From the NCBI GenBank assembly GCA_010909165.1, contig MU008175.1, forward strand, positions 983,370 through 1,047,369: DNA of 64,000 nt. Direction: 5' to 3'. This document shows, piece after piece, positions 19,118 to 58,500 of this stretch (position 1 is its first letter; each line of letters opens with the position of its first letter). The notes beneath the pieces are model-generated. The model saw nothing but the letters and a program-made list of their open reading frames with translations, ran no database searches and was not told the origin of the DNA. Origin of the DNA: Anthoceros angustus (lineage: Eukaryota; Plantae; Anthocerotophyta). A program made the translations under genes and the position numbers.

Positions 19118-20936
19118 GGTGACTCATTCAGGTCTGCACAACGTGGATAGTCCTTTGGACCAGCAGCCCATTGGCTACCAAGCAGCAAGTGCAGCTGCAT
19201 CCTTGATGGCGGGTGCACTAGGAGGTTCGCAGCTGGCCATGCTGATGAGCCAAGCTCAAGGAGCGGGTCAGGGGAATGGCCCCGCTCAGGCAAATGGGGG
19301 CGCCGACCTCACCAACCACTTGGCTACCATGTCTAAGCCGCAGCTGTACGACGTCATGGTCCAAATGAGGGTACTGTTCCCTTTACTTTCCTGTTGGCTG
19401 TAGGATTTTGCTCGGCCTGTGCATACCCTTTTGATTTCTCCTGATATTCAGATGGTACTTGTGTGCGGTTTTGTACTATGAAGTTTTCTAACAAGGGAAT
19501 CTGTATTTACATGCAGACTCTTTTAGAACAGAACCAGCAGCAAGCTCGTCAATTCCTTCTCTCGAACCCTCAGTTCACCAAGGCACTATTTCAGGTTTGT
19601 CTACTCTGCTTTCTTCGAAGTTGTGCCAAGTGGTGGACTCATGCATGCTGATTTTGCAGCTTTATCAGAGAGCTCTACCGATGACATTGTTGGTTTTTTT
19701 GGCAGGCACAAATTATGCTGGGCATGGTCAAGCCTTCCATGCAAGGGGTATGTATTCGTGTAATGTTTGTGTTAGTTCCATTTGACTGGGGGGTTTGTAG
19801 TAGGTTGCATTTCTGATGTCGAGTTTCTTTCAGGGGCCTGCGGTGCTACCTAATCAGCAGGCTCAGGGATCTCTTTCCCAGCAGCCAACTAGTGTACTGA
19901 ACCAGCAACTGGCTCCGCAGCTGCAGTCGCAGCAGCCAAGAGTCTCGGCAGCAGCAGCACAAAGCATCCAACAGCCTCTGCAGAGTATGAGCTTCCAGGG
20001 CTCTTCCAACCAGCAACACGTCCCATTTCAGGTGCCAAGAAGATCCTTCACACCAAAGCATATAGTTTGAGCTCCAACTGACTCATCGTCTCACCAGCAC
20101 TAACTCTCTTTTTTCCACATCAGCAGGGTACTGCAATTTCTCAAGCGCAACTTGCCATGGCTTATCAGCATGGACCGCATGCATCAAACCAGCCTGTGAG
20201 TCAGCAGGCTTATCAGCAGCAGGTAAGACTTTTGTTCAGTTTGTGTGATCTATCTATCGACTCCTTTTAGAGTGGACTGCGTTGATGACGTGATTCATGT
20301 ATTGGTTTGCAGATGGCGTCCCGCATGGGCGGTGACATAGGTGGAGCAGCGATGTTAGGAAATTCAGGGATGTTAGGTGTCCCTCAGTCTAGGGTTCCAG
20401 CAATGAGTGGAGGTTTGAGCAGCATGGCCACAGGAATCATGCACCCCTCACAAGCAAGTGGCAACCTCGGTGCATCAATGGGTGTGGCCATGAGCGGTGG
20501 CCACCTGCTGGCAAGTGGGAATATGGGTGGTGGCATGGGCATGTCAATGGCCGGTGGCCCACTGGGCGAGGCCAGCTCCAGGATAGCTTATGCTCGACCA
20601 ATTGCGGCATCGGGTGATGAAATAGGGAGCAGTGCATCCATGATGCCACCATCGTATGCCCAAAGGCTGCAGCAGTCCCAACTCCAAGCCCAGTCTCAGG
20701 CCCAAGTCCAACCACAAGTACGTGTCTCTACAGTCTCTCACTTGAAGAATAAACTAATTCCGCCATCAGGTCTTAACTCAGCCTCGCATGCATCACTGTT
20801 GCAGTTGCAAGCTCTAGAACTTGAGCAGCAGAAGGCTTTGCTGCAGCAGGTGATGAACCTCACACCTGAGCAGATCAACTCGCTACCCATAGAGCAGAGA
20901 CAGCAAGTGATTCAGCTTCAGCAGGCTCTGCGATAG
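18112..20936 (+). CDS. CSTF64: Cleavage stimulation factor 64 kDa subunit (RRM, hinge, C-terminal domain)
   Basis: [88 protein letters not shown]; hinge [42 protein letters not shown]; C-terminal [32 protein letters not shown]. Confidence 0.95.
19084..19118 (+). repeat. CAG/CAA tract encoding poly-Gln in CstF64
   Basis: cagcagcaacaacagcagcagcagcagcagcag. Confidence 0.9.
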
Positions 20937-21489
20937 CGGAGACCTGAGAAACTGTAGATCCCTCTAGGCCATCTTAGACAAATGTTACGTTTCCTGTTCC
21001 AACTGTTTTATTCATTATTAAGAACGCTCGGTTCGGTGGTACATTCCTCTTATCCTTTTGAAAAATCTTTGTAGGCCCCACGGCATCTTTATCGTTGTTG
21101 TTGTATTAGTAGAATCCTCTGGCTCACCTGCTGCCGCTCGTTCAAGCCATGCAATCTTTCCTCCTGTGCCCCCACCACTATGAGCGTCTGTGGTAGGAGC
21201 CCCCCTGGCCGAAGATGTCACCCCTGGCCCAAGAAATCACCACGACAGAGTGGGACGAAACGCTTGGTAGCGAACACATGTATATACTTTTGTTCGCCGA
21301 TCGGCCAGCGATTGCGAGTGAATGAAACTTCTGACAATTTGTGTTGTGACCTCAGTCCCCAATTCTAGTACTTTCGCAGGGAATGACGCTGGCAACGAAT
21401 CCATTTCAATAGACGCTTGTAGAATGTTCACTCCTTCCAAAGCTATGCTGGATTGAAGAGCTGGAAAGTGTTAGAATCCGGGAATCGTG

Positions 21490-24400
21490 ATGGGGAGCCT
21501 GGCTCAGATAGGAGCACAGACTCCTTTCTTGGCCAAAGCAGAATTTGATGGCTACTCTCGGGATTACGGGGCTCAGCATTCTTCCTATCATGGACGTCCT
21601 TTGAGGAGTAATTTGCAATGTGGTGCGATCACGTTTTGCCCAGTTAACAAGGTTGTTGGTCTCACGGTTGCTCAACTGAGGAGGAACGCCGTGGACGTCG
21701 TGGATACCCGTCCAGATCTATCCGCTTCCCATAAAGCAGAGAATTCTGTTTCCAGTGTTGTTACGGTGGACAATGACAGCTCTGAGGAGTACACTGTGAT
21801 ACGTGTGAAGGCTTTCAACAAGCCAGCATTTCTGCAAAGGGTGATTTCCACTTTTCAAGACCTCGGTTTGCAGGTGTCCAGAGCTACAATTGACGTTGAA
21901 GATGGAGACTATGTTTCCAAATCCTTCTATCTGACGGACGAGCAGGGGCAGAAGATTCTGAACCCCGCGGATAAGAAGAATATAACAAACGCGTTGCTGT
22001 CGGTCTTGGATGAGGAGCTTCTTTCAGGAAAGGGAAGGGTGCAAAGCCGACCGCTTTCTGTACTCTCCAGGAAAGCAGATGATCTGTTGGGGGCACCGGA
22101 GATGAAACGGAGAACAGAGCTTTTGTACAGCATAGTGGACCAGTATTTGAAGGATGATGTGAGGAGTATACAAAAGAGTATAGTGGATCATGTTGAGTAC
22201 ACGGTTGCTCGGTCACGGTTCAAGTTCGATGACTTTGAGGCCTACCAGGTATTCTCAAAGAAATTGGCGGTTGTGCTGTGCCATGCTGATTCCTTTTCGT
22301 GCTGCCAGTGGTGATTCACACCTTTTGGTCAACACAGATCAAAAGTTCTCACAATCGGTTGAGCAACTTGTGCAGGGTACAGCTTACAGTGTACGAGACC
22401 GTCTCATTGAGAGCTGGAATGATACCCAGCAGTTCTTTAGGGACAAGGACGTGAAACGAGTGTTCTACCTGTCCATGGAGTTCTTGATGGGTGTGTGAGC
22501 TCTGTTTCAACATTCATGTGTCGCTTGCAAGCAGCAGGTGAGACTGGATGACTCTGATCATGCACGTCATGCGTAGGTCGTTCTTTGCTTAACAGCATTT
22601 TCAACCTCGGAATCAAGGATCAATATGCCGAAGCGTTGAGGCAGCTAGGCTACAACTTGGAGGTGCTGGTGGAACAGGTAGGTTTTTGGAAAGAGACTGA
22701 CTTGGCTGGCCACCACTCCTATCAGTAAAAGTATGTTCTCCTCGAAGTGGCAGTATCGTATAAAAGTTGGTTTCCAGCATCTTAGGGAGCTAGTATGCAA
22801 TTGCAGGAAACAATATGGAGAGGCAGCTGCCAAGGATCTGATACTATCAGGGATATCAGATAGTCATACTTTAGATTCAGTAGTAGCATTTGAATTGATT
22901 GGGTGAGCATCTGATGGTCTCCTGGACTTCTCCTTTGAAGCCCTGAGCCCCCATGGAAAGTCGCCATCTCACAAGCCCTGGCATAGAAATCAGTCTAATG
23001 CCTTTGCGTGCAGGAGCGGGATGCTGCCTTGGGCAACGGAGGACTAGGGCGTCTAGCTGCGTGTTTCCTGGATTCTCTTGCAACTCTAGACTATCCAGCT
23101 TGGGGGTACGTGCCTGTCAGCTGAGAGAATCCTGTTCTTGAGTTTTAGGCAATGCTGTGGTTGTGATGGTCCTCTAATGAGAACGGTTGTTTCCGGTTTA
23201 GATACGGGATTCGGTATCAGTATGGCATGTTCAGGCAGACAATTCAAGATGGGTATCAACACGAGCAGCCTGACTACTGGCTGAACTTTGGGAATCCATG
23301 GGAGATTGAGCGGGTGCATGTCACATACTCTGTGCAGGTGAGTATTCTGCTTGATTAACAAGTCGATCCATTTTAAGGTAGAATTCTGTAAACAGGTCTC
23401 TTGTTGAATTTTTGGGTACGTTGTGCTGTGTCCAGTTTTATGGAACGGTAGAAGAAGAGTGGCGCAATGGGAAAAAGCATATGAAATGGGTTCCTGGAGA
23501 AATAGTAAGTCTGGCTACTCCTCGACTCTGGTGTGCTGCACGTATCTTACTCAACTGCTCATTCTGCTTCCTGATGTTTCACATCTGTCTTATGTTAGGT
23601 TGAAGCTGTTGCTTATGACAATCCTATTCCCGGTTATGATACAAACAACACCATAAATATGCGCCTCTGGGCTGCTAAACCAAGTGGAGAGTTTGATCTG
23701 GTAGCAATCCTGGCCCACATTTTCACCATAGCATGTCCAGTCTTATGTAACGGCTCCTTGTGTTGGACCTGGAATTCGTACTGTACTATGGCTTATGAGC
23801 ACTTTGTGTACTTGGATAGCAATCATTCAATACAGGGGATTATGTGAATGCTATCCTCAGTAAACAGCGAGCGGAGACCATCAGCAGCATCCTTTATCCG
23901 GATGATCGAACTTATCAGGTCTGTTGCAGATGCGCGTGGTGGTTCAAGTCGAGCTACAGCTATGTGTTTTCTAACATTGTGAGAGCTCTATGACAACTCA
24001 TCATGTCTCAGGCAAGTGTTTGATGGCATGCTTTTGCAGGGTAAGGAGCTTAGGTTGAAACAGCAGCACTTTTTTGTCTCGGCGTCCCTGCAGGACGTGG
24101 TTCGACGATACAAGGACCACCATCCAACTTTTGATGAGTTCCCTGATAAAGTAAGGAACTGCATCATGTCCTTTTCATTGCATTTGTAACCAACCATCAG
24201 TGAGCTTATGTGCATGAACATTGAGCAATCAATTCTGATTCACAACTGTCTTCTCGTTTCTCAACAGGTCGCCTTGCAACTCAATGATACCCATCCAATC
24301 ATTGGGGTGCCAGAACTAATGCGTCTTTTAGTGGATGTTGAGGAGCTTGAGTGGAGCAAAGCCTGGAAAATCACCACACATGTTTTCTCTTTCACGGTGC

Positions 24401-27073: not shown

Positions 27074-27354
27074 ATGCTGTGGTACCATGAAGAATCTGAT
27101 CCATTGAAGCCTATGAGTGTCCGGTTAATTTCGGACGTTAAAGGTAATAGGGAGTAGCTAGTACCTTTTACTGTATATTCATTTAGGCTTTATTTATTGG
27201 TGGGATACTTAAGTATTTCTGTTTTAGATGCAACTCTGCGTTACCGCGAGGAAGGAACATTTATTTAGGTTTTAGACGCAAGTCTTCTTGCCTCAAGAAA
27301 AGAATTGACCTATTCCCTGGTGTACACACTTGAGCCCTGGCAAGTTCTCCCATC

Positions 27355-30300
27355 TCATGGTCGACCCTTACAACTGCAAGAACCAGCTGCAAATCGATGC
27401 ACACGGTAGCCATCACTTACAACAATCTCTCTCTTCTCAAGCCTTGACATGATCTCCGTGGAACTATGGCAGTCACTGCACATGCGTAGATTCTTTGTTA
27501 CCAGCAGAGGTGTGCCACTCGGCGTGTTCAAGAGGCCAAATGCCAGAGCTAGCTTCTCAGCGTGCCCACAAAGTGCAGCTTCCTTTTCCTTCTCACACAT
27601 TGTCTTAAACACCAACTTTGTGTGCGGTACGTGGCCTCCTTCCTCCTTCAGTCGCAGATTTGTACTCTCTACCTGAAGTGCAATATCCTCTCTCCTTTCT
27701 CCCACCAGAAATCGATGTACCTGCTTATTCACCTCTATGCTCGCCACTGCAGGTTTCTTGTTAGCGCCTGCTACCACTCTCTGTGTTTCAAGCCTGCCTA
27801 CATCGGTCCACCTACCGGCCTCAGCGTAGGCGTTGGCCATTAGCACATATGCGGGCGCATCCTGGGGGTCCAGCCTAACAATGCTTTCGAAACACCACAC
27901 CGCCCTCTCTATGTCACCATGACTTTTGCAGGCATTCAACAAAGACCTCAACCCCACAACATTACTTTGGCCCTCACAGGACAAAAGCATCTTCTCTGCC
28001 TCATTTAAATGGCCCGCACGCCCAAGAAGATCAATCATGCAAGTGTAATGCTCAATAGTTGGTTTGATGCCATGCTGTTCAGTCATGGAATCAAAGTGCT
28101 TGCGGCCCTCGTCAACCAGTCCCTCATGACTACATGCTACTAGAAGGCAAGTAAAAGTCGCACTATCAGGCTGAATACCAGCAACTAACATCTCCTCAAA
28201 ACAAGCTAGAGCTCTGTGACCATCATCACAAGTACCATATCCAGATATTAGGGCATTCCATGTCACCACATCCTTTGCGGCCAAGCTTTCAAACACCCGC
28301 CGTGCATCTTTAAGTTCACCACATTTTGCATACATGTCCACCAGGCAGGTGCCCACCAGTATGTCATCCAGCAGTCCTCTTTCGACAATCTGTGAGTGCA
28401 GCTGCCTGCCCTTCTGTAAGGCACCAGTGCTTGCACAGGCCTTCAGAAGGCAAGCAAAAGTAACATGGTTAGCCAAAATCAGGCCCTCCTGCTCCATTTG
28501 TCCATACACAACAAGTGCCTCTTGTCCGAGCCCTTGCTGTGCATACCCAGCTATCAGGGCATTCCATGTCACCACATCCTTCGTGGCCAAGCTGTCAAAA
28601 ACCTGGCGTGCATCTTTAAGTTCACCACATTTTGCGTACATGTCCACCAGGCAGGTGCCCACCAGTATGTCATCCAGCAGTCCTCTTTCGACAATCTGTG
28701 AGTGCAGCTGCCTGCCCTTCTGTAAGGCACCAGTGCTTGCACAGGCCTTCAGAAGGCAAAAGTAACATGGTTAGCCAAAATCAGGCCCTCCTGCTCCATT
28801 TGTCCATACACAACAAGTGCCTCATGTCCCAGCCCTTGCTGGGCATACCCAGCAATCAGCACCGTCCATGTCACCACATCCTTTGTGGCCAAGCTTTCAA
28901 AAACCTGGCGTGCATCTTCCAGTTCACCACATTTTGCATACATGTCCACCAGGCAGGTGCCCACCAGTATGTCATCCAGCAGTCCTCTTTCCACAATCTG
29001 TGAGTGCAGCTGCCTGCCCTTCTGTAAGGCACCAGTGCTTGCACAGGCCTTCAGAAGGCAAGCAAAAGTAACATGGTTACCCAAAGTCAGGCCCTCCAGC
29101 TCCATTTGTCCATACACAACAAGCGCCTCATGTCCCAGTCCTTGCTGTGCATACCCAGCAATCAGCGCCGTCCATGTCACCACATCCTTCCTGGCCAAGC
29201 TTTCAAAAACTTGGCGTGCATCTTGCAGTTCCCCACATTTTGCATACATGTCCACCAGGCAGTTGCCCACCAGTATATCATCCACCAGTCCTCTTTCCAC
29301 AATCTGCGAATGCAGCTGCCTGCCCTTCTGTAAGGCACCAGTGCTTGCACAGGCCTTCAGAAGGCAAGCAAAAGTAACATGGTCAGCCATAATCAGGCCC
29401 TCCTGTTCCATTTGTCCGTACAGATTAAGCGCCTCCGGGCCAACTCCTTGCTGCGTATACCCAGATATCAGAGCATTCCAGGTCACCACATCCTTTGTGC
29501 CCATGCTGTCAAAAACCTTCCGTGCATTGTGCAGTTCACCACATTTTGCGTACATGTCCACCAGGCAGGTGCTAACAAACAGGTCAACACGAATGCCACT
29601 GTGCAATACATCATAGTGCACTTTTCTCCCAGATTCCAAGTCGGAGGCCAATGCACAAGCTTGTAGGGCAGCTATGAAGACGTGAGCATCCGCCTTCACT
29701 CCTGACATCCGCATCTCATGGTACAGTTGTATGGCCTCGTTTGGTTTCCCATGTTTAGCATGTGCAGAGATGATGGAAGACCACATGAAAACATCTGGTT
29801 TGCCTACCCTGGTGAACACATCCATGGCCTCCTGTAGCCTACCCCCACATGCATACATACGCAAAATATGGTTGCCCAAAAATGCATTCGACTCGTACCC
29901 AAGTTTAACAGTGAGATCATGAACTCGTCGCCCCACAACCACATCCTTCTTCGCTGTACACAGTTTCAGCACAGTGTAGAACAGAGACAGAGAAATGGCA
30001 GAGTCTGTCTGCGCCAGACATTCCAGGGCTCCAACGGCCTCAGAAAGCTTCCCCTGCTGACTTAACATGCTCACGGTTCCAGCCGTCACGACGCCCATTT
30101 CGGATCCTGCACGGCTGCCACGTTCAGGCTGATCCTGAAAGCTCGACTTGGAAGGAGAGGCACCATGACCCATCTGCATATCCAAAAAAACGAGCTGCTC
30201 ATCAACCCAAGCTGGCTTAACATGCTGTTTAACCACAGGACCTCGCCGGACCCCTTACGCCGGAAGTCAGGCGGGAGCTCTTCTTATCTCGTCTGTTGTC

Positions 30301-30526
30301 CCACCACATGGTAGGGAAAAAATTGTTGCCACAAGTGCTCCTGCTCCTGGCGACGACCATCGCTGGAAAATCCGTCCCCACCACATTTTCTCGGAAGTGG
30401 AAGTGCTGGGCTTCCACTGCTGCACCTGGAGGCTTGGTTTTGCCAGGGTTGACTCCTAGATGAGGTGAGCAGGAGCTCCAATCCTGTACACACACCAATT
30501 TGTTGGGTCCACGGTCCGGTGGCCAT
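27355..30526 (-). CDS. PLS-class PPR RNA-editing factor, ~20 PPR motifs-E1-E2-DYW:KP ending GRP (copy A); frameshifted as assembled
   Basis: ORFs 28749-30236 and 27355-28662 are separated by a 4-bp deletion near 28757, and the leader carries further small indels. The C-terminus has NKKPAVASIEV, CGHAEKLALAFGL, KNLRMCSDCH and HRFAAGSCSCKGRP*. Confidence 0.92.
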
Positions 30527-30921
30527 CGTTCAGGGACCGCTGTTGGAAAGTCTAACAGGAGATTGCAGATGTTGAGTACAAGCTGAGGAAGTGCAGACGG
30601 ATGGCAAAAGGCGTTATGGTTAAGGAATTTTGAAAACAAAGTCCTATCATAACTTGTTTGGCTAAATCACTGTGTTTGGGCTCTCCTCCAGATTATATCA
30701 GTCCAAACATGCCAATCATTTCGTTCCAAACAGAGAGAAACGATCACCTATCCAATGAAATGAAATTCATTTGATTCCGATTAGGTCTCTCTGTTACAAG
30801 AGGTGATCTCATGATTGGCATCCATGTCCAGTTTGGGCAGGGATGGAAGCAAGCCACACGCTCCAAATTGCACACCCAAGAAAAATTTTCTCTGGCGTAT
30901 ACATTTGATTCTTCACTGATC

Positions 30922-32149
30922 TCACGGTCGACCCTTACAACACAACCAGCTGCGAATCGATGCACACGGTACCCATCCCTTACAACAATGTCTCTGTTCA
31001 AGCCTTGACATGATCTCCGTGGAACTGTGGCAGTCACTGCACATGCGTAGATTCTTCGTTACCACCAGAGGTGTCCCACTCAGGTGTTCAAGAGACCAAA
31101 CGAGCTAGCTTCTCAGCATGCCCACAAAGCGCATCTTCCTTTTCCTTCTCACACAGTGGCTTCAACACCAACTTTGTGTGAGGTACGTGGCCTCCTTCCT
31201 GCTTCAGACGTGCATTCGTGCTCTCTACCTTAAGCGCAATATCCTCTCTTTCTCCCACCCAAATCTATGTACCTGCTTCTTCACCTCAATGGTCGCCACT
31301 GCAGGTTTCTTGTTAGCTCCTGCTACCATTCTCTGTGTTTCAATCCTGTCTACATCCACCTACCTGCATCTGCATAGGCATTGGCCATGAGCACATATGC
31401 AGACGCCCCTGAGGTCCAGCCTAACAATGCTTTCAAAACACCACATCGCCCTCTCTATATCCCCGTGACTTTTGCAGGCATTCAACAAAGACGTCAAGCC
31501 CACAACATTACTTTGGCTCACATGATAATAGCATCTTCTCTGCCTCATCTAAATGGCCTGCACGCCCAAGAAGATCAATCATGCAATTGTAATGCTCAAT
31601 AGTAGGTTTGATGCCATGCTGTTCAGCCATGGAATCAAAGTGCTTGCGACCCTCATGGACCAGTCCCTCATGACTGCATGCTACTAGAAGGCAAGTAAAA
31701 GCATCAGGCTGATCCTGAAAGCTCGACTTGGAAGGAGAGGCACCATGACCCATCTGCATATCCAAAAAAACGAGCTGCTCATCAACCCAAGCTGGTTTGA
31801 GTATGCTGTTTAACCACAGGACCTCGCCGGACTCCTTACGCTGGAAGTCAGGCGAACGGGAGCCCTTCTTATCTCGTCTGTTATCCCACCACAGGGTAGG
31901 GTCCAGAAAAAATTGTTGCCACAAGTGCTCCTGCTCCTGGCGACGACCATCGCTGGAAAATCCGTCCCCATCCACATGTTTTCTCGGAAGTGGAAGTGCT
32001 GGGCTGCTTCCACTGCTGCACCTGGGGGCTTGGTTGGTTGCCAGGGTTCGACTCCCTGCCGTGAGGTGAGCGGGAGCTCCACTGAGAATCCCTGTACACA
32101 CACCAATTTGTTGGGCGCACAACGGGTCTGGTTGCCATACTGTGGACAT
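30922..32149 (-). pseudogene. PPR-DYW:KP copy B: leader fused directly to L2-S2-E1-E2-DYW, whole PLS array deleted
   Basis: The ORF reads ...SKSSFQDQPD|AFTCLLVACSHEGLVH..., then frameshifts at LLSCEPK*. The DYW remnant carries small indels. Confidence 0.85.
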
Positions 32150-32612
32150 TTTGCAGGGACCGCTGTTGGACGATAAGTCTAACAGGAGATTGTTCCAGAT
32201 GTTGAGTACAAACACATTCTGGAGGGAAGTGCAGACGGTTTTTTATTGGCAAAAAGGCGTTATGGTTAAGGAATTTTGAAAACAAAGTCCTATCATAACT
32301 TGTTTGGCTAAATCACTGTGTTTGGGCTCTCCTCCCATGATTATATCAGTCCAAACATGCGCCAATCATTTCGTTCCAAACAGAGAGAAACGATCACCTA
32401 TCCAATGAAATGAAATTCATTTGATTCCGATTAGGTCTCTCTGTTACAAGAGGTGTATCTCAGGGCCCTGATTGGCCATCCAACACAATGTCGCAGTTTG
32501 GGCAGGGATGGAATTAGGCAAGCGTACAAGACGCTTTCCCTCAGAAATATTAAAGCCACACCCAAGAAAAAAGAAATTTTCTCTGGCGTATACATTTGAT
32601 TCTTCACTGATC

Positions 32613-35600
32613 TCACGGTCGACCCTTACAACTGCAAGAGCCAGCTGCGAATCGATGCACACGGTAACCATCCCTTACAACAATGTCTCTCCGTTCAAGC
32701 CTTGACATGATCTCCGTGGAACTGTGGCAATCTCCGCACATCCGTAGATTCTTAGTTACCACCAGAGGTGTCCCACTCGGAGTGTTCAAGAGACCAAATG
32801 CCAGAGCTAGCTTCTCAGCATGCCCACAAAGCGCATCTTCCTTTTCCTTCTCACACAGTTGCTTCAACACCAACTTTGTGTTAGGTATGTGGCCTCCTTC
32901 CTGCTTCAGACGTGCATTTGTGCTCTCTACCTGAAGCGCAATGTCCTCTCTTCTTTCTCCAACCTCGAATGTATGTACCTGCTTCTTCACCTCAATGCTT
33001 GCCACTGCAGGTTTCTTGTTGGCGCCTGCTAACAATCTCTGTGTTTCAATCCTGTCTACATCGTTCCACCTACCTGCATCTGCATAGGCGTTGGCCATGA
33101 GCACATATGCAGACGCCCCCTGAGGATCCAGTCCAACAAGGCTTTCAAAACAGCGCGTCGCCCTTTCTACATCCCCGTGATTTTTGCAGGCATTCAGCAG
33201 AGATGTCAGCCCCACAACGTTACTTTGGCTCACATGATAATAGCATCTTCTCTGCCTCATCTAGATGACCTGCACGCCCAAGGAGATCAATCATGCAATT
33301 GTAATGCTCAATAGTTGGTTTGATGCCATACTGTTCAGCCATGGAATCAAAGTGCTTGCGACCCTCATGGACCAGTCCCTCATGACTGCATGCTACTAGA
33401 AGGCAAGTAAAAGTAGCATCATCAGGCTGAATACCGGCACCTACCATCTCCTCAAAACAAGCTAGTGCTGTATGACCATCATTACAAGCTCCATACCCAG
33501 ATATTAGGGCATTCCATGCCACCACATCCTTTGTATTCATGCTGTCAAAAACCTGGCGTGCATCTTCCAGTTCACCACATTTTGCATACATGTCCACCAG
33601 GCAGGTGCCCACCAGTTATCCAGCAGTCCTCTTTCACAATCTGTGAGTGCAGCTGCCTGCCCTTCTGTAAGGCACCAGTGCTTGCACAGGCCTTCAGAAG
33701 GCAAGCAAAAGTAACATTATTAGCCAAAATCAGGCCCTCCTGCTCCATTTGTCCATACACAACAAGCGCCTCTTGGCCAAGTCCTTGCTGTGCATACCCA
33801 GCAATCAGGGCATTCCATGTCACCACATCCTTTGTGCTGTCAAAAACCTGGCGTGCATCTTCCAGTTCACCACATTTTGCATACATGTCCACCAGGCAGG
33901 TGCCCACCAGTATGTCATCCAGCAGTCCTCTTTCACAATCTGAGTGCAGCTGCCTGCCCTTGTAAGGCACCAGTGCTTGCACAGGCCTTCAGAAGGCAAG
34001 CAAAAGTAACATGGTTAGCCAAAATCAGGCCCTCCTGCTCCATTTGTCCATACAACAAGCGCCTCTTGGCCAAGTCCTTGCTGCATACCCAGCAATCAGG
34101 GCATTCCATGTCACCACATCCTTTGGCCAAGCTGTCAAAAACCTGGCGTGCATCTTCCAGTTCACCACATTTTGCATACATGTCCACCAGGCAGTTGCCC
34201 ACCAGTATATCATCCAGTCCTCTTTCACAATCTGAGTGCAGCTGCCTGCCCTTCTGTAAGGCACCAGTGCTTACAGGCCTTCAGAAGGCAAGCAAAAGTA
34301 ACATGGTCAGCCAAAATCAGGCCCTCCTGCTCCATTTGTCCATACAGAACAAGCGCCTCTTGGCCGACTCCTTGCTGCATACCCAGATATCAGGGCATTC
34401 CATGTCACCACATCCTTTGTGGCCATGCTGTCAAAAACCTGGCGTGCATCTTCAGTTCACCACATTTTGCATACATATCCACCAGGCAGGTGCCAACAAA
34501 CAAGTCAGAGGAATGCCACTGTGCAACACATCACAGTGCACTTTTCTGCCAGATTCCAAGTCGGCCAATGCACAAGCTTGAAGGGCAGCTACAAAGACGT
34601 GAGCATCCGCCTTCACTCCTGACCTACGCATCTCATGGTACAGTTGTATGGCCTCATTAGGTTTCCCATGCTTAGCATGCAGAGATGATGGAAGACCACA
34701 TGAAGGCATCTGGTTTGCCACCCTGGTGAACACATCCATGGCCTCCTGTACCTCCACATCCCCGTGATTTTTGCAGGCATTCAGCAGAGATGTCAGCCCC
34801 ACAACGTTACTTTGGCTCCCACATGATAATAGCATGTTTTCTGCCTCATCTAGATGACCTGCACGCCCAAGGAGATCAATCATGCAATTGTAATGCTCAA
34901 TAGTTGGTTTGATGCCATACTGTCCAGCTATGGAATCAAAGTGCTTGCGACCCTCATGGACCAGTCCCTTATGACTGCATGCTACTAGAATGCAAGTAAA
35001 AGTCGTATCATTAGGCTGAATACCGGCAACTAACATCTCCTCAAAACAAGCTAGTGCTCAGTGACCTTCATCACAAGTGCCATATCCAGATATCAGAGCA
35101 TTCCATGTCACCACATTCTTTGTGGCCATGCTGTCAAAAACCAGGCGTGCATCATCTGATTCACCACATTTTGCATACATGTCCACCAGGCAGGTGCCCA
35201 CCAGTTATCCAGCAGTCCTCTTTCACAATCTGTGAGTGCAGCTGCCTGCCTGCCCTTCTGTAAGGCACCAGTGCTTGCACAGGCCTTCAGAAGGCAAGCA
35301 AAAGTAACATCGTCAGCCAAAATCAGGCCCTCCTGCTCCATTTGTCCATACAACAAGCGCCTCTTGGCCAAGTCCTTGCTGTGCATACCCAGCAATCAGG
35401 GCTCCATGTCACCACATCCTTTGTGGCCAAGCTGTCAAAAACCTGGCGTGCATCTTCCAGTTCACCACATTTTGCATACATGTCCACCAGGCAGTGCCCA
35501 GTATGTCATCCAGCAGTCCTCTTTCCACAATCTGTGAGTGCAGCTGCCTGCCCTTCTGTAAGGCACCAGTGCTTGCACAGGCCTTCAGAAGGCAAGCAAA

Positions 35601-36830
35601 AGTAACATGGTTAGCCAAAATCAGGCCCTCCTGCTCCATTTGTCCATACACAACAAGCCTCTTGTCCAAGTCCTTGCTGCATACCCAGCAATCAGGGCAT
35701 TCCATGTCACCACATCCTTTGGCCATGCTGTCAAAAACCTGGCGTGCAGTTCACCACATTTTGCATACATGTCCACCAGGCAGTTGCCCACCAGTATATC
35801 AGCAGTCCTCTTTCCACAATCTGTGAGTGCAGCTGCCTGCCCTTCTGTAAGGCACCAGTGCTTGCACAGGCCTTCAGAAGGCAAGCAAAAGTATGGTCAG
35901 CCAAAATCAGGCCCTCCTGCTCCATTTGTCCATACACAAGCGCCTCTTGGCCGAGTCCTTGCTGTGCATACCCAGCAATCAGGGCATTCCATGTCACCAC
36001 ATCCTTTGTGCCATGCTGTCAAAAACCTGGCGTGCATCTTTCAGTTCACCACATTTTGCATACATGTCGACCAGGCAGGTGCCAACAAACAAGTTAGAGG
36101 AATGCCACTGTGCAACACATCACAGTGCACTTTTCTGCCAGATTCCAAGTCGGCGGCAAATGCACAAGCTTGAAGGGCAGCTACAAAGACGTGAGCATCC
36201 GCCTTCACTGACCTACGCATCTCATGGTACAGTTGTATGGCCTCATTAGGTTTCCCATGCTTAGCATGTGCGAGATTATGGAAGACCACATGAAGGCATC
36301 TGGTTTGCCACCCTGGTGAACACATCCATGGCCTCCTAGCCTACCTCCACATGCATACATGCGCAAGATATGGTTCCCCAAGTATGCATTCGACTCGTAC
36401 CCAAGTTTGACAGTGAGATCATGAACTCGTCGCCCCACCAAATCCTTCTTAGCTGTACACAGTTTTAGCACAGTAAAACAGAGACTGAAATAGCAGAGTC
36501 TGTCTGCGCCAGAGATTCCAGGGCTCCAACGGCCTCAAGCTTCCCTGCTGACATAACATGCTCACGGTTCCAGCCGTTACGACGCCCATTTCCGATCCTG
36601 CACGCCTGCCAGGTTCAGGCTTATCCGGAGAGCTCGACTTGGAAGGAGGCACCATGACCCATCTGCATATCCAAGGAAACGAGCTGCTCATCAACCCAAG
36701 CTGGCTTAAACATGCTGTTTAACCACAGACCTCGCCGGACCCCTTACGCCGGAAGTCAGGCGAACGGGAGCTCTTCTTATCTCGTCTGTTGTCCCACCAC
36801 ATGGTAGGGTCCAGAAAAATTGTTGCCACA
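32613..36830 (-). pseudogene. PPR-DYW:KP copy C: internally duplicated, indel-rich PLS arrays with an intact E1-E2-DYW(GRP) ORF at 32613-33260
   Basis: Repeated ~303-bp P1-L1-S1 units. A junction near 34756 joins E1 back to the first S1. The terminal ORF has HAEKLA, CGDCH and GSCSCKGRP*. Confidence 0.85.
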
Positions 36831-36834
36831 AGTG

Positions 36835-39020
36835 CCATATCCAGATATCAGAGCATTCCATGTCACCACATTCTTTGTGGCCATGCTGTCAAAAACCAGG
36901 CGTGCATCATCTGATTCACCACATTTTGCATACATGTCCACCAGGCAGGTGCCCACCAGTGTGTCATCCAGCAGTCCTCTTTCGACAATCTCTGAGTGCA
37001 GCTGCCTGCCCTTTTGTAAGGCACCAGTGCTTGCACAGGCCTTCAGAAGGCAGGCAAAAGTAACATTGTTAGCCAAAATCAGGCCCTCCTGCTCCATTTG
37101 TCCATACACAACAAGTGCCTCTTGTCCAAGACCTTGCTGGGCATATCCAGCAGTCCTCTTCGACAATCTGTGAGTGCAGCTGCCTGCCCTTCTGTAAGGC
37201 ACCAGTGCTTGCACAGGCCTTCAGAAGGCAAAAGTAACATCGTCAGCCAAAATCAGGCCTCCTGCTCCATTTGTCCATACACAACAAGCGCCTCTTGGCC
37301 GAGTCCTTGCTGTGCATACCAGCAATCAGGGCATTCCATGTCACCACATCTTTGTGGCCAAGCTGTCAAAAACCTGGCGTGCATCTTCCATTTCCCCACA
37401 TTTTGCATACATATCCACCAGGGAGGTGCCCACCAGTATGTCATCCAGCAGTCCTCTTTCCACAATCTGTGAGTGCAGCTGCCTGCCCTTCTGTAAGGCA
37501 CCAGTGCTTGCACAGGCCTTCAGAAGGCAAGCAAAAGTAACATGGTTACCCAAAGTCAGGCCCTCCATCTCCATTTTTCCATACACAACAAGCGCCTCAT
37601 GTCCAAGTCCTTGCTGTGCATACCCAGCAATCAGCGCCGTCCATGTCACCACATCCTTCCTGGCCAAGCTTTCAAAAGCCTGACGTGCATCTTGCAGTTC
37701 CCCACATTTTGCATACATGTCCACCAGGCAGTTGCCCACCAGTATATCATCCACCAGTCCTCTTTCCACAATCTGCGGATGCTGCCCTTCTGTAAGGCAC
37801 CAGTGCTTGCACAGGCCTTCAGAAGGCAAGCAAAAGTGACATGGTCAGCCATAATCAGGCCCTCCTGTTCCATTTGTCCGTACAGAACAAGCGCCTCCTG
37901 GCCGACTCCTTGCTGTGCATACCCAGATATCAGAGCATTCCATGTCACCACATCCTTTGTGCCCATGCTGTCAAAAACCTTCCGTGCATCTTGCAGTTCA
38001 CCACATTTTGCATACATATCCACCAGGCAGGTGCCAACAAACAAGTCAGCAAGAACGCCACTGAGCAATACATCAGAGTGCACTTTTCTCCCAGATTCCA
38101 AGTCGGAGGCCAATGCACAAGCTTGTAGGGCAGCTATGAAGACGTGAGCATCCGCCTTCACTCCTGACCTCCGCATCTCATGGTACAGTTGTATGGCCTC
38201 GTTTGGTTTCCCATGTTTAGCATGTGCAGAGATGATGGAAGACCACATGAAAACATCTGGTTTGCCTATCCTGGTGAACACATCCATGGCCTCCTGTAGC
38301 CTACCCCCACGTGCATACATGCGCAAGATGTCGTTCCCCAAGTATGCGTTCGACTCGTACCCAAGTTTAACAGTCAGATCATGAACTCGTCGCCCCACAA
38401 CCACATCCTTCTTCGCTGTACACAGTTTTAGCACAGTACAAAACAGAGACTGAGAAATACCAGACTCTGTCTGCGCCAAAGATTCCAAGGCCCGACGGCC
38501 TCTGAAAGCCTCCCCTGCTGACATAACACGCTCACGGTTGCAGCCGTTACGACGCCCATTTCGGATCCTGCACGCCTGCCAAGTTCAGGCTCATCCGGAG
38601 AGCTCGACCTGGAAGGAGAGGCACCATGACCCATCTGCATATCCAAGGAGAGGAGCTGCTCATCAACCCAAGCTGGCTTAGACATGCTGTTTAACCACAG
38701 TACCTCGCCGGACCCCTTACGCCGGAAGTCAGGCGAACGGGAGCTCTTCTTATCTCGTCTGTTGTCCCACCACATGGTAGGGTCCAGAAAAATTGTTGCC
38801 ACAAGTGCTCCTGCTCCTGGCGACGACCATCGCTCGACAATCCACACTCACAAATTTTCTCGGCGGGTAAGTGTTGAGCTCATTCACTGCTGCACCTGGG
38901 GCTTGGTTTCGCCAGGGCTTGACTCCCTGAGGTCAGGTGAGCCGGAAGTCCTCGTAGAATCCCTGTGCGCACACCAATTTGTTGGGTCCACAGTGGGTCC
39001 GGTTGCCATACTGTGGCCAT
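36835..39020 (-). pseudogene. PPR copy D: leader plus PLS array, truncated within P2, no DYW
   Basis: ORFs 38428-38847, 37646-38524 and 37341-37829 are close paralogues of copy A. It ends ...WNALISGYGTC|GNNF at a junction with the copy C leader. Confidence 0.85.
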
Positions 39021-40760
39021 CGTTCAGGAGCGCTGTCGAACGAAGAGTCTTCAACAGAGTATGGCAGGATGCCAGGTACTGTGTGGCCACCACACTGAAC
39101 CATGGCTGGAAGCCATCACGGTTCAAGTGGTTTCTTAGCCACTTGCTTAGGTGTCTGTCCGACGTTGAGCAGTCTGGAGAAGCCATTACGGTTCAGGTAG
39201 TTTCTTAGAAGGAGGGTGTCTGTCCGACGTCCAGCATTCATTGCCAAAGACCATGAATCTTGGGCGCCGGTCAAGATATTTAGGGTCTTCATATCCTCGG
39301 CTGTTGTGCACAAAGACGTCGATCGTATCTGGATGGGATGTATAGCATGAATATACAAATAGCCGTATGCATTCCCTTCGATGCTACTACAGAGATGGTT
39401 GTCCATGTTCATTTACTGTTATTTAACGAATCGCATGGATTAACAACATGGGCATCATTTCCATCGAAAACAATGGTCGTCCTATAGGAGGAAACCTTTT
39501 GCCTACCACTATGCAATGGTCGTCCTATAGGAGGAAACCTTTTGCCTACCACTATGGGCCGCTGAAAGATATAAACTTCTCTACGACACTCTAATTGTTG
39601 CCTTCTTCTGCGGGTATGCTTAAATATGGCATTTCAATGCCCATCAAAAACCCGTTCGCGTATATTCACGTCAAAAGCCGCTTGAGAGGCAAGGAGGAGC
39701 TGCTCATCAACCCAAGCTGGCTTAGACATGCTGTTTAACCACAGTACCTCGCCGGACCCCTTACGCCGGAAGTCAGGCGAACGGGAGCTCTTCTTATCCA
39801 CTCTGTTGTCCCACCACATGGTAGGGTCCAGAAAGAATTGTTGCCACAAGTGCTCCTGCTCCTGGCGACGACCATCGCTCGACAATCCGTCCACACTCAC
39901 AAATTTTCTCGGCGGAGTAAGTGTTGAGCTCATTCCGCTGCTGCACCTGGGGGCTTGGTTGTTCGCCAGGGCTTGACTCCCTGAGGTCAGGTGAGCCGGA
40001 AGTCCTCGTAGAATCCCTGTGCGCACACCAATTTGTTGGGTCCACAGTGGGTCCGGTTGCCATACTGTGGCCATCGTTCAGGGAGCGCTGTCGAACGAAG
40101 AGTCTTCAACAGAGTATGGCAGGATGCCAGGTACTGTGTGTGGCCACACCACACTGAACCATGGCTGGAGAAGCCATCACGGTTCAAGTGGTTTCTTAGC
40201 CACTTGCTTAGGTGTCTGTCCGACGTTGAGCAGTCTGGAGAAGCCATTACGGTTCAGGTAGTTTCTTAGAAGAAGGAGGGTGTCTGTCCGACGTCCAGCA
40301 TTCATTGCCAAAGACCATGAATCTTGGGCGCCGGTCAAGATATTTAGGGTCTTCATATCCTCGGCTGTTGTGCACAAAGACGTCGATCGTATCTGGATGG
40401 GATGTATAGCATGAATATACAAATAGCCGTATGCATTCCCTTCGATGCTACTACAGAGATGGTTGTCCATGTTCATTTACTGTTATTTAACGAATCGCAT
40501 GGATTAACAACATGGGCATCATTTCCATCGAAAACAATGGTCGTCCTATAGGAGGAAACCTTTTGCCTACCACTATGCAATGGTCGTCCTATAGGAGGAA
40601 ACCTTTTGCCTACCACTATGGGCCGCTGAAAGATATAAACTTCTCTACGACACTCTAATTGTTTGCCTTCTTCTGCAGGGTATGCTTAAATATGGCATTT
40701 CAATGCCCATCAAAAACCCCGTTCCGCGTATATTCACGTCAAAAGCCGCTTGAGAGGCAA
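38635..40760. repeat. ~1.06 kb tandem duplication of the PPR upstream region and leader (leader-only copy E, ORF 39634-40074)
   Basis: Units at ~38635-39690 and ~39695-40760 are near-identical. Each contains a duplicated 43-bp motif, caatggtcgtcctataggaggaaaccttttgcctaccactatg. Confidence 0.9.
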
Positions 40761-40940
40761 GGAGGAAAAGGGGGAGAGGGATCTGAGGTAGAGGAGGAGA
40801 AGGAGTAGGAGGAGGAGAGGGAGGGCGAGAGGGAAGGAGGAGGAGGGGGAAAGCAAAAGGACAAGAGGGGGAGATTATAAGGAGGAGGAGGGGAAGATGG
40901 GAAGGAGGAGGAGGGGGAGAGGGAAAGGAAGAGGAGGAGG
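40760..40940. repeat. Polypurine (GA-rich) tract
   Basis: About 180 bp of almost exclusively G/A on the + strand. Confidence 0.85.
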
Positions 40941-41244
40941 CCCGTTCCATGCTGTGATTTCCAGTCTCAATTTTTCAGCTGATGCGTAACCAATGTGACA
41001 TGACGTTGGTGAAGGGATGGTGGCAAGGCGCGATCACGTATACGAGCGCAAGCAGATCTTGTACTTGCAGAGGATTGCAAGGTCAGGCCAAGACCTGTTC
41101 CAATACTGTGATTTCCTCTCAAATTTTCAATTGATGCGTAACTAGTGTGATGTGATGTTGGTGAAGGGATGGTGGCCTCCTGTAGTAGCAACAACCCTCA
41201 TCATCGGCCCGCATATCATACATGCGCAATTGCATGAGTTTGCA

Positions 41245-52602: not shown

Positions 52603-53282
52603 CTACCCAGATGCTGTTATAGAGACCCATTTCTCCTCCTCCTCCTCTTCTTCTTCCCCTTCTTCCCCTTCTTCTTCTTCCCCTTCTTCCCCTTCTTCTT
52701 CTTCTTCTTCTTCTTCTTGTCCTTCATTATTTTGTTGTTCATCATCTTGTTTTTCATCACATTTTCTTTCATCGCTGACATCATATTCTAGTTCTTCATC
52801 ACCTTTATGACATTTTTGTTCTCGTACCATTCTGAACGAAGAAGTAGAATCTGCCACGTTTGCTCCTTCATCTGCCGTTTTGTAAGAAGAAGTAGAATCT
52901 GCATCACTTGCTCCTTCATCTGCCATTGTGTAAGAAGAAGTAGAATTTGCACCGCTTGCTCCTTCATCTGCCGCTATGTAGCTTGCTTTTTCTTCAGAAG
53001 AAATAGAACCTACGTCGATTGCTCCTCCTTCTACATTGCCTTCTTCTTGAGAGTTTGCCACTTCTTCTTCTACATTGCCTTCAGTAGGCACATCAACACT
53101 CGCCTCTACTCCAGGTCGAGAATCCAAATCACTCCCCGGCACACTCGCGTCTATTACAGAACGAACATCCAAATTACTCTCGGGCACATTCGCCTCTACT
53201 TTAGAACGAGCATCCGAATTACTTATGTGCTTTGGAACTACAATGCCCATCCTGACATCAATATCTTCGAATTCTCTCTGAA
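52603..53282 (-). CDS. Acidic low-complexity orphan exon/ORF (15-aa repeats, poly-Glu tail)
   Basis: The 215-aa ORF has ADEGASxAxSTSSY three times and EEEEEEEEGEEGEEEE. A polypyrimidine-CAG acceptor sits just upstream, and homologues lie at ~49170 and ~54200. Confidence 0.4.
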
Positions 53283-55527: not shown

Positions 55528-58500
55528 ATGGGTTCGCTCGACGTGGCCTCCATTGAATTCGCCTCCTCCGAGCCCATCCTGTACGTGAACGGGAAGCGGC
55601 ACGTGCTGCCGGAAGACGCTGCGCACCGCACCTTGCTGGAGTATCTACGACTGGGTAATTGTTGTGGAGTGTTTTGGGTGGTTGGATCACTTGAATTTGA
55701 TTGATCGCGCCCGGCCGGAGTTTGGATTCAATGACGGATGGAAGAGCTGGTCCAAGTTGGAAAATGGGTTGTGGGTTGTGTTTCTCACGTTTCGTGTTGG
55801 CCTTCAGATTTGCACTTGACGGGGACGAAGCTTGGGTGCGGGGAAGGTGGATGTGGGGCTTGCACTGTGATGGTGTCGCACTTTGATTCTGATCGGCAGC
55901 TCATCGTGTAAGTGGTCTTGCTGGACTGGATCAGGATGAGCCATCTGGTTGACCTCTTGTGCTTACGTGGGAGGTGCGTGGATGCATGCAGGCACCGGGC
56001 GGTGAATGCGTGCCTGACTCCACTGTATTCTGTGGAAGGAATGCATGTGGTTACTGTTGAGGGAATTGGCAATCGGCGGCAGGGTTTCCACAAAGTGCAG
56101 GTGACTTGGCCCAGGTCCTGTTGGGATGGTTGGGATGGTGTGCCGGCTATGATACGTGTGTAAAATGTAGTGTATGTGGTACGCTGATGTGCAGGAAGCG
56201 TTGTCCAATGCCCATGGGTCCCAATGTGGATTCTGTACTCCAGGATTTGTAATGTCCATGTATTCGTTGCTGAGGTCTCGTAATGAGCCTCCGAGCTTTG
56301 AGGAGATTGAGGAGCACCTTGCAGGCAATCTCTGTCGATGTACAGGCTATCGTCCCATTCTGGATGCATTTAGAACCTTCGCCAAGTCAGACCCTTCTGT
56401 ATATACCGCTGAAGCTGCCTCGGCTGCTGGTGTTGGAGATGCTAAAGAGGTGGTTACCGCAAAGGAGGGTCAGGTGATTTGCCCATCGACAGGACAGCCT
56501 TGTGGATGTGGCAAAACGTCTGAGGCACAACCAAAAAATGGGTATGAGCTTAAGGAGGTTGCAGCTGCCCGACAGGACCTGGTAAAGGCTGGTGAGCAGC
56601 CATGTGTGAAGGCTGGCGGCCATGAGTGTTCGACATCTGAGCTTATCTTTCCGCCTGAGCTAGTGAAAAGGAAGGTGCAACCTTTACTCCTGAAGGGGAT
56701 GAGAGGGATGGTATGGTACCGTCCAACAAAGTTGAACGATCTCCTGTCTCTGAAACAGAAGTTCCCTGATGCCAAGCTTGTGGTTGGAAACACAGAAATT
56801 GGTATAGAAACTAGATTCAAGGGCTTGATCTACCCTGTACTCATTGGAGTTTCGAGTGTGCCTGAGATGAACAATGTGAAAATCAGTGACGATGGCATCT
56901 TGGTGGGTGCCGCATGTAATTTAACACAGCTGTTGGAAGCCTTTCGACAAAGTGTCAACGAGCGCCCAGCTTTTGAGACGTCAGCTTGTCTGGCTTTCAT
57001 TGAACAGCTCCGGTGGTTTGCAGGAAGTCAAATTAGAAATGTTGCCTCTGTTGGTGGGAACATTTGTACAGCTAGTCCAATTTCGGACCTGAACCCTTTA
57101 TGGATGGCAAGTCGAGCGACTTTCACTGTGCTTTCCCATGACAACTCCTCAAGGACAATGGATGCGAAGAGTTTTTTTGTAGGTTATCGAAAGGTCAATC
57201 TGCGGAACTCTGAAATCCTAGTGTCTGTGTTCATTCCTTGGACAAGAAAGTATGAATATGTGAAGGAGTTCAAACAAGCTCATCGACGTGATGATGACAT
57301 TGCGCTTGTTAATGCGGGCATGCGTGTGGCCTTGTCTGAAGCTGATGGAATCTGGCTGGTTGATGATGTATCTTTGGTATATGGGGGTGTAGCTGCAGTG
57401 CCTTTGTGTGCATTCAAAACGGAAGCATTTCTGAAGGGAAAACCTTGGAACCAGGAGACTGTAGATGGTGCCCTCCATGTTCTTGGAAAGGATGTAGTGA
57501 TAGCAGAGAATGCACCAGGTGGCATGGTCGAGTTTCGTCGTTCCCTAACATCTAGCTTCTTCTTTAAATTTTTCCTGTCTACAGTCTACAAGCTTGAAGT
57601 GGAGGAGGGTTATGCTCACCAGTTGCCCTCCAGCTATAAATCAGCTGCGCAATCGTACCATAGAGAGCCATCTCATGGAATGCAGATTTATGAAAAGAAG
57701 GCCAAGGGTACCTCGGTTGGATTGCCCTTCATTCATGCTTCTGCTAAGCTACAGGTTTGTATATGCTCTTGATACGTGCTGTTCCTGTCCCGTGAGCATA
57801 ATTGTTTTGCTCACATGTCTGTGTGCCTGTTCCTCAGGTAACTGGTGAAGCTGAGTACTGCGATGATATTCCATTACCTGCAAATGGTTTGCATGCGGCC
57901 CTGGTCCTCAGCACAAGGCCGCATGCAAAAATTGTGTCCATAGACTCCAGAGAGGCAGAAGCGCAGCCTGGTTTTGAGGGCTTCTTTACGGCGAAGGATG
58001 TGCCAGGTGGAAATGATGTGGGTGCTGTTGCTCATGACGAGGAGCTTTTTGCGACCAGAGTGGTGACTGCTGTTGGTCAGGTGAATGGAGGCAGAGATTC
58101 ACAACGTTTGTTCTATTGTGCTGTCTGCCTTGAGAACATACTTTTGGATAACTCGTACTCCTCTGTGCTACAGGTGATAGGAGTGGTCGTTGCAAACACT
58201 TACGAGAATGCCAAGGCGGCTGCTCAGAAAGTGAAAGTCAGTTATAAAGAGTTACCAGCTGTCTTGAGCATTGAAGATGCCTTAGAGGCAAAAAGTTTTT
58301 TTCCTACTACTGCTCGAGTGCTCCATGACGGAGATGCAGACCATTGTTTCCAAAGTGGTGAATGTGAGTATGTAAGAGAGGGCAGAGTACAAGTAGGCGG
58401 TCAAGAGCACTTTTATCTCGAGCCCAATTGCTCGTTGGTGTGGACCACCGATGGTGGAAATGAAGTGCATATGATATCCTCGACTCAGGTCTGAAACGTG

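Follow-up and report, generated by a model that had tools for sequence, protein, structure and literature searches.

A frame-broken cluster of GRP-type DYW:KP editing-factor genes in the hornwort Anthoceros angustus, probably a decaying gene pair remodeled by four tandem duplications

We analyzed a stretch of 64,000 nt from the hornwort Anthoceros angustus (GCA_010909165.1, contig MU008175.1, 983,370-1,047,369; hereafter the window, by which all positions are numbered) and found that its minus strand carries, at 40766-27355 (~13 kb), five related units of PLS-class pentatricopeptide repeat (PPR) genes in the order E, D, C, B and A. Self-BLAST of the window returned 61 pairs of repeats that reach 250 nt or more, every one of them confined to 27352-40766, and tblastn with the unit A open reading frames (ORFs) across the 64-kb window found no match beyond the cluster. 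The five copies go back to two ancestral genes in head-to-tail order, to which four tandem duplications of 1.05-2.0 kb, each directly adjacent to its source, were added. We propose, with a probability of roughly 0.55, that the locus is a decaying two-gene cluster of nuclear GRP-type PPR editing-factor genes that was remodeled by four microhomology-mediated tandem duplications. A sequence-only reading of the same stretch had described five same-strand copies in different states, and self-BLAST, Pfam matches and ORFs bear this out at these positions on the minus strand: A has all modules and is frameshifted, B lacks the PLS array, C has a doubled array, D lacks the DYW domain and E holds a leader. 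All statements on the state of a reading frame refer to the assembly sequence as given.

The units, all on the minus strand, differ in which modules they retain. Unit E (39699..40766) consists of ~690 nt of upstream DNA and a 146-aa leader ORF (40074-39634), and is the upstream copy of the J1 duplication described below. The earlier label of this unit as leader only captures the ORF and omits both the upstream DNA and the OSB-type PDF motif that the leader carries. Unit D (36836..39698) comprises upstream DNA, a frame-broken leader and a PLS array that ends within the P2 motif (...GYGTC), and lacks both the E motifs and the DYW domain. Unit C (36826-32613 overall) has a doubled array and falls into two parts: C1 (34760..36826), with a 5'-truncated leader that retains the PDF motif only, a PLS array and P2-L2-S2-E1 up to ...HGDVE, and C2 (32613..34752), with an array and the tail P2-L2-S2-E1-E2-DYW:KP, which ends in GRP. 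Unit B (30922..32149) is a chimera in which a complete, in-frame leader is joined at J4 to L2-S2-E1-E2-DYW:KP, and unit A (27355..30526) has every module present. Two spacers separate the last three units: I_C (32150..32612), from the stop codon of C to the start codon of B, is homologous only to I_B (30527..30921), which is its deletion-laden counterpart (K = 0.058, 14 gaps, all in I_B). An origin of spacer I as a copy of the D/E upstream DNA or of the A 3' flank was rejected, since no similarity to either was detected. Homology between the genes ends ~36 nt before the ATG and ~6 nt past the stop codon.

Four repeat pairs in the cluster abut directly, and we read the overlap between the members of each pair as junction microhomology. 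At J1, between E and D, the pair 38650-39698 / 39694-40766 (divergence 1.2%) overlaps in the 5-nt microhomology TCCTC (39694..39698). Here E is 97.4% identical to 38650-39698, with 12 substitutions and 12 deletions, all of the deletions being on the D side, and the leader codons ...VDEQLL continue into upstream non-coding DNA, which results in the 146-aa ORF. At J2, between D and C, the pair 35072-36835 / 36827-38808 (divergence 5.4%) overlaps in the 9-nt microhomology GCACTTGTG (36827..36835). This junction is out of frame and leads from the P2 motif into mid-leader, GYGTC being followed by GNNFSGPYHVVGQQTR and a stop 16 codons past the junction. J3, between C1 and C2 (33166-34759 / 34753-36352, divergence 4.3%), joins the E2 motif in frame to the first P motif (..HGDVE/VQEAMDVF..) at an imperfect microhomology of ~7 nt, ATGTGGA with one mismatch (34753..34759). 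J4 (30124-31712 / 31704-33430, divergence 6.7%) joins the linker to the L2 motif, also in frame (..QDQPD/AFTCLL..), at the 9-nt microhomology TCAGCCTGA (31704..31712). In the junction alignments, all four junctions connect non-homologous modules at 5-9 nt of microhomology, and none lies inside extended homology. Unequal crossing-over between the long PLS repeats, which would place the junctions within such homology, is disfavored, as they sit outside the homology of the triplets. Because they join unrelated modules at short microhomologies and not within PLS triplets, we favor replication template switching or microhomology-mediated repair as the process that may have made them. The chimera B, unit E, the truncated D and the doubled array of C are mechanical by-products of these junctions.

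From this architecture we infer the following order of events. The starting state would have been two complete head-to-tail genes, G1 and G2. G1 would have run from an upstream region of its own through the leader that D now carries and a single array to the tail that is now part of C; G2 would have comprised spacer I, a leader and what is today the body of A. The J4 duplication across the boundary between the G1 tail and the G2 leader would have left both genes whole and made the chimera B in between. The J2 duplication, inside G1 and out of frame, would then have split this gene into D, with leader and array, and C, without a start of its own. The J3 duplication would have doubled the C array in frame, and E would stem from the J1 duplication, which took in upstream/promoter DNA and a portion of the leader. 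A phylogeny of the four arrays agrees with this history of two genes and four duplications: 29 sites support the split of A and D from C1 and C2, 2 sites conflict with it, and the tree is compatible with A as the outgroup. These same counts led us to reject mosaic gene conversion among the four arrays.

The arrays are built from 306-nt PLS triplets that are 88-92% identical. In unit A, 4.3 copies of the P-L-S triplet follow one another, 91% identical and with zero indels among triplets, and four 102-aa triplets occupy 28253-29572 of the minus strand (~91% DNA identity). The D array has 3.0 triplets of ~299 nt and the C1 array 3.4 triplets with a period of 298. Across the A triplets, the 35-aa L motif is invariant except for one V/L difference (triplet position 69), and the P and S motifs vary at position 5 (N/T), at the last residue (D/N) and at a few other sites. 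As predicted proteins, these triplets would look much like a designer PPR scaffold. Antisense ORFs of 200-260 aa run across the PLS arrays on the plus strand (28885-29616, 33790-34581 and 37542-38147); they are most likely not genes and are stop-free by chance of the repeat.

The predicted proteins of the cluster are, to judge from their motifs, GRP-subgroup DYW:KP PPR factors, the class linked to U-to-C editing in hornworts. Pfam matches to PPR, PPR_1, PPR_2 and PPR_3 reach E values down to 1.5e-62, and the tails of A and C match PPR, E_motif and DYW_deaminase, the last with E values of 5e-31 and 3e-34. Read off the ORFs, the C-termini of A and C contain NKKPAVASIEV, CGHAEK, CSDCH/CGDCH and a terminal KGRP, and B has a frameshifted version of the same tail that likewise ends in GRP. 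The DYW domain of C aligns end to end with the solved domains 9kfx (synthetic PPR-DYW), 7w86 (DYW1) and 7o4e (OTP86). Compared to these, it has KP in place of PG (NKKPAVASIEV vs KEPGCSWIEV) and HAE in place of HSE, is four residues short at the xHP site, ends in ...CKGRP and keeps the CxxCH zinc site; the zinc ligands HAE and CSDCH/CGDCH align with HSE and CGDCH of 9kfx and 7w86. This alignment confirms the KP motif, HAE, CxxCH and C-terminal GRP from which the sequence-only reading had drawn its class assignment. As in PLS-class PPR-E-DYW proteins generally, tandem P, L and S motifs are followed by E1/E2 and then by a DYW domain with HxE and CxxC ligands; the feature of this class that the cluster lacks is a continuous ORF for the whole protein, each unit of the assembly needing at least one frame change.

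Two DYW:KP subgroups, DRH and GRP, are distinguished in hornworts and named from their last three residues (PMC9478123, which cites Gerke et al. 2020 on the GRP proteins). The KP box, the loss of xHP and the GRP end by which the GRP subgroup is defined are all found here, and most DYW:KP proteins are without xHP (PMC9478123). The link of this class to U-to-C editing, which the earlier reading had taken as established, is supported by the designer GRP proteins KP2 and KP3, which in E. coli reach 22-26% U-to-C editing and have zero C-to-U activity (PMC9478123). The cluster thus resembles the hornwort GRP DYW:KP proteins in its PLS array, E1/E2 motifs, DYW domain with KP box, HAE, CxxCH, xHP loss and GRP end, but its copies are all frame-broken as assembled, whereas the published work concerns consensus designs. 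Hornwort genomes contain 1,600-2,300 PPR genes each, which arose mainly by dispersed duplication, with tandem duplication among the other modes scored (PMC13386178), and about 10% of the genes of A. angustus lie in tandem clusters (PMC7027989).

In addition to the array and the tail, the genes have a leader that consists of a transit-peptide-like N-terminus, a PDF motif and a linker, and that is complete in B. We found the consensus FF.DP..WWDNR..K...PDF..K..GEVLWLN...P.WVD at 39634-40074, 31772-32149 and 38431-38847 of the minus strand. When the 146-aa leader ORF was searched exhaustively without a profile, 679 matches at E <=0.001 were obtained, in which leader residues ~62-130 correspond to a motif that occurs 2-13 times per protein, for example in OSB3-like proteins with an SSB fold; one of these, from Chenopodium quinoa (P0123), carries Pfam SSB together with the leader-type motif. 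We therefore identify the leader motif as an OSB-type PDF motif. It matches the repeated C-terminal motif of these OSB organellar single-stranded DNA-binding proteins, but here it is single and lies N-terminal to a PPR array. The gene design would accordingly be a transit-peptide-like N-terminus, an OSB-type PDF motif, a PLS array that reads RNA, E1/E2 and a DYW:KP domain of the deaminase fold. PPR proteins from Diphasiastrum, Adiantum and Logan contigs likewise carry one or more PDF motifs at their N-terminal end. One such PDF-PPR fusion (P0259) has a canonical DYW end, so the fusion is not special to U-to-C editors. Our literature search found no paper on PDF-motif fusions to PPR or DYW proteins, nor on hornwort PPR pseudogene clusters.

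The same module order is found in an intact relative, P0072, a 753-aa GRP-type protein encoded without introns as the single gene on a 9.1-kb, Illumina-derived Logan contig (SRR33208241). It has a Ser/Arg/Ala-rich N-terminus, a PDF-like motif (...LW.QFF.D...WD.R..K......DF..K...EVLWLN...P.WVD.QL), a linker, PLS repeats, P2-L2-S2-E1-E2 and a DYW:KP domain with a GRP end. P0072 is 64% identical to the A tail ORF across 100% of that ORF and 38% identical to the cluster leader across 147 residues. Unlike the cluster genes, it is open-framed, has fewer PLS triplets and stands alone on its contig. Protein searches returned no near-identical sequence, the best full-coverage match being 64% identical.

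No unit of the cluster is open as assembled. In unit A, one ORF (30236-28749, 495 aa) covers the linker and the PLS array, and a second (28662-27355, 435 aa) spans the remaining array, P2L2S2, E1, E2 and the DYW:KP domain with its GRP end. A 4-bp TTGC deletion lies between 28760 and 28759, where one TTGC was lost from the TTGCTTGC repeat (slippage), and the leader remnant of A (30526-30124) can be read only via three frames. The frameshift in A had been noticed before, and this much is confirmed; the damage is not confined to A, as each unit is frame-broken. A is nevertheless the least damaged unit, and C retains an intact E2-DYW ORF. B has an ATG-to-stop ORF at 32149-31508 and a tail with eight deletions of 1-4 bp each. 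Compared to A, C1 has 22 indels (21 of them deletions), C2 has 16, all deletions, and the D array at least 6; the 5' part of D has 12 deletions relative to E, and spacer I_B with the A leader has 23 relative to I_C with the B leader. The C tail shows a single 2-bp loss, between 33232 and 33231, which brings an upstream out-of-frame ATG into the E2-DYW frame and so creates a stand-alone ORF of 215 aa (33260-32613). One of the eight deletions in the B tail is the same 2-bp loss, between 31520 and 31519, in the context TGT[GG]GAGCC. Five frameshifting deletions are common to C1 and C2. If these are real and not recurrent consensus errors, they suggest that the array was already broken before the J3 duplication, which, with the deletions read as inherited, would have copied a broken array.

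Several observations weigh against a cluster that has simply decayed. The substitutions carry the mark of constraint: omega is 0.17-0.25 in the tails and 0.24-0.37 in the arrays, compared to 0.8-0.96 in shifted-frame alignments that served as the control. In a permutation test that preserves mutation types, all tail and array pairs show a synonymous excess (p < 0.001), with 25 synonymous differences observed between the B and C tails where 13 are expected (p < 0.0002). If the genes are dead, this enrichment means either that they died recently, selection having acted until lately, or that the differences were imported from constrained paralogues. The damage itself is one-sided. Deletion-rich and deletion-free blocks alternate across 27355-40766, and 84 small deletions (1-15 bp), confined to some of these blocks, stand against about one insertion. 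The deletion-rich blocks are 39698-33690 and 31712-30124, and the clean ones are E, the stretch from the C tail to the B leader, and the body of A. Within each duplicate pair the deletions all fall in one member (30:0 for J4, 12:0 for J1), which fits long-read consensus noise as well as it fits biology. On terminal branches, deletions equal or exceed substitutions, as in C2, with 14 private deletions and 8 private substitution sites, 6 of which cluster beside a deletion and look like alignment artefacts. This indel spectrum is unlike ordinary pseudogene decay and resembles unpolished long-read consensus error; it reflects either a very strong deletion bias or consensus noise. Moreover, the 2-bp loss of the B and C tails is absent from C_mid, the younger internal copy in C (~34.8 kb). 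Simple inheritance therefore fails for this loss, which may have arisen twice, spread by conversion or be a recurrent error. Finally, public reads give no support at the locus itself. Of 24 listed runs, 20 contain ~0.3 of the sampled 31-mers, and in the four runs that were mapped the spacer bins 30738-30936 and 32330-32528 have zero depth, so the locus is not in these runs.

The main rival explanation is that assembly noise masks live genes. Most of the 1-7-bp deletions would be errors of the long-read consensus, perhaps at methylated cytosines, in a region that is silenced or repetitive and that short reads failed to polish. A, and perhaps D and B, would then be open in the real genome, and the cluster would hold at least one working U-to-C factor together with young chimeric derivatives. 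The near absence of insertions, the balance of deletions and substitutions on terminal branches, the low omega values throughout (0.17-0.37) and the identical loss in a G-rich context in B and C but not in C_mid all speak for this explanation, as does a slight excess of deletions that touch CG/CHG cytosines (50 of 84, where 38.9 are expected; p = 0.01). This excess is, however, just 1.3-fold, and sequencing noise at methylated cytosines may or may not account for the deletions by itself. Many deletions are 4-15 bp long and lie outside homopolymers, and spacer I_B has 14 of them although it is unique sequence that should polish well, whereas the equally repetitive A array has no indels among its triplets. 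The A leader combines its deletions with a neutral substitution pattern, as 4 synonymous differences from the B leader are observed and 5.0 expected; this lack of an excess is as expected for neutral decay. The five deletions common to C1 and C2 also count against noise, J2 is out of frame regardless, and the flanking xanthine dehydrogenase gene, described below, is clean. We consider masked live genes possible but rather unlikely, and we infer loss of function as the more probable state of the decaying two-gene cluster, with which the under-representation of GRP proteins in transcriptomes (PMC9478123) fits, if many copies are silent or dead.

A more radical doubt concerns the large-scale architecture, which could be a mis-assembly in which a long-read assembler stitched a repetitive family into false tandem duplications. 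The four mapped runs, which do not contain the locus, offer no independent read support, and on the coding parts they contain only unitigs of <100 nt that belong to the gene family at large, tens of thousands of them at >=95% identity and with a very high summed depth; this high coding depth indicates that related organisms carry a very large and very similar gene family, on which an assembler might founder. Against this, the duplicate pairs differ by real-looking substitutions that are biased by codon position and by private multi-nucleotide changes, such as GTGG in E compared to CGAG in all other leaders. Their divergences are graded from 1.2% to 6.7%, which is not the near-identity plus noise of a false duplication, the array phylogeny is clean, and the junctions are single, sharp and located at microhomologies. 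We regard a false architecture as improbable. More doubtful still is the adaptive workshop of the sequence-only reading, in which birth and death would re-assort leaders, PLS arrays and DYW:KP modules into new specificities. The GRP-type class and the repeated rearrangement on which that interpretation built are both borne out, and some features are suggestive. Readable fusions arise at all junctions but J2, in frame at J3 and J4 and as the 146-aa ORF at J1; the leader plus L2-S2-E1-E2-DYW of B and the leader plus PLS of D complement each other as two halves; and within the A triplets the P and S motifs vary at position 5 and at their last residue, and L at one residue. The re-assortment itself is not supported. 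What we see are ordinary adjacent duplications whose breakpoints track microhomology and not module borders, J2 is out of frame, no unit as assembled encodes an intact product, no transcript or intact chimera turned up and, if the C1/C2 common deletions are real, duplication continued after the frames had broken. In addition, no junction alters the code positions of an array, so the rearrangements themselves create no new specificity. We give this reading the lowest probability of all. Hardly more probable is a variant that would require most small deletions to be noise, namely that a split U-to-C editing system is seen here at its birth, in which B would be an in-frame short protein (transit-peptide-like part, PDF motif, L2-S2-E1-E2 and DYW:KP) beside the recognition-only D (PDF motif and PLS array). 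If true, hornworts would have a reverse-editing equivalent of the DYW1/CRR4 and DYW2/E+ partnerships known from flowering plants. D resembles the recognition half of CRR4/DYW1 or of an E+ PPR with DYW2 or MEF8, B resembles the half with E motifs and DYW, and the C DYW domain aligns to DYW1 (7w86) with an E value of 1e-29; MEF8 is reported to act as a trans deaminase (PMC9522420). Those flowering-plant factors are, however, intact C-to-U (PG-type) proteins that act in trans, whereas B and D are broken-frame by-products of duplication.

The neighborhood of the cluster provides a reference for the quality of the assembly. A xanthine dehydrogenase / aldehyde oxidase gene on the plus strand (56174-58494) encodes Fer2_2, FAD_binding_5, CO_deh_flav_C, a/b hammerhead and MoCo-binding domains in long clean exons, and in this unique gene the assembly is accurate. 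An apparent frameshift at 57.75 kb was rejected as a marker of noise, since a normal GT..AG intron of roughly 85 nt lies there. On the other side, ORFs with a CstF C-terminal domain and an ACR-type ACT domain (20307-22314, plus strand) represent ordinary nuclear genes beside the cluster. Just upstream of unit E, at 40740-41180, lies a CT-rich low-complexity tract, proline/serine-coding, with 88-nt repeats that are 84% identical; it is weakly similar to 52626-52724 on the opposite strand.

Tandem PPR clusters are well known from flowering plants, where the RFL genes form the classic birth-and-death PPR loci, with tandem arrangement, fast turnover, pseudogenes and recombinants. RFL genes are of the P class, lack a deaminase and recombine between homologous repeats. 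The locus described here shares the tandem clustering with them but consists of PLS-DYW:KP genes, and its junctions lie at microhomologies of 5-9 nt. While the family, its chemistry and tandem PPR clusters as such were already known, our analysis adds a fully resolved rearrangement history and the birth of a chimeric PPR gene, and unit B offers a clean worked example of how a tandem duplication over a gene boundary can produce an in-frame chimera. The balance of deletions and substitutions is so unusual that frame breaks in repeated families of this assembly are untrustworthy either way, and copies in clusters of this kind call for accurate reads and RNA before they are counted as functional diversity. 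The only U-to-C RNA base editors known to us have their natural source in GRP-type DYW:KP proteins. Knowing which genomic DYW:KP copies are alive thus matters for anyone who mines genomes for such editors, and in A. angustus two genes and four small, microhomology-mediated duplications can account for what looks like a striking array of variants.

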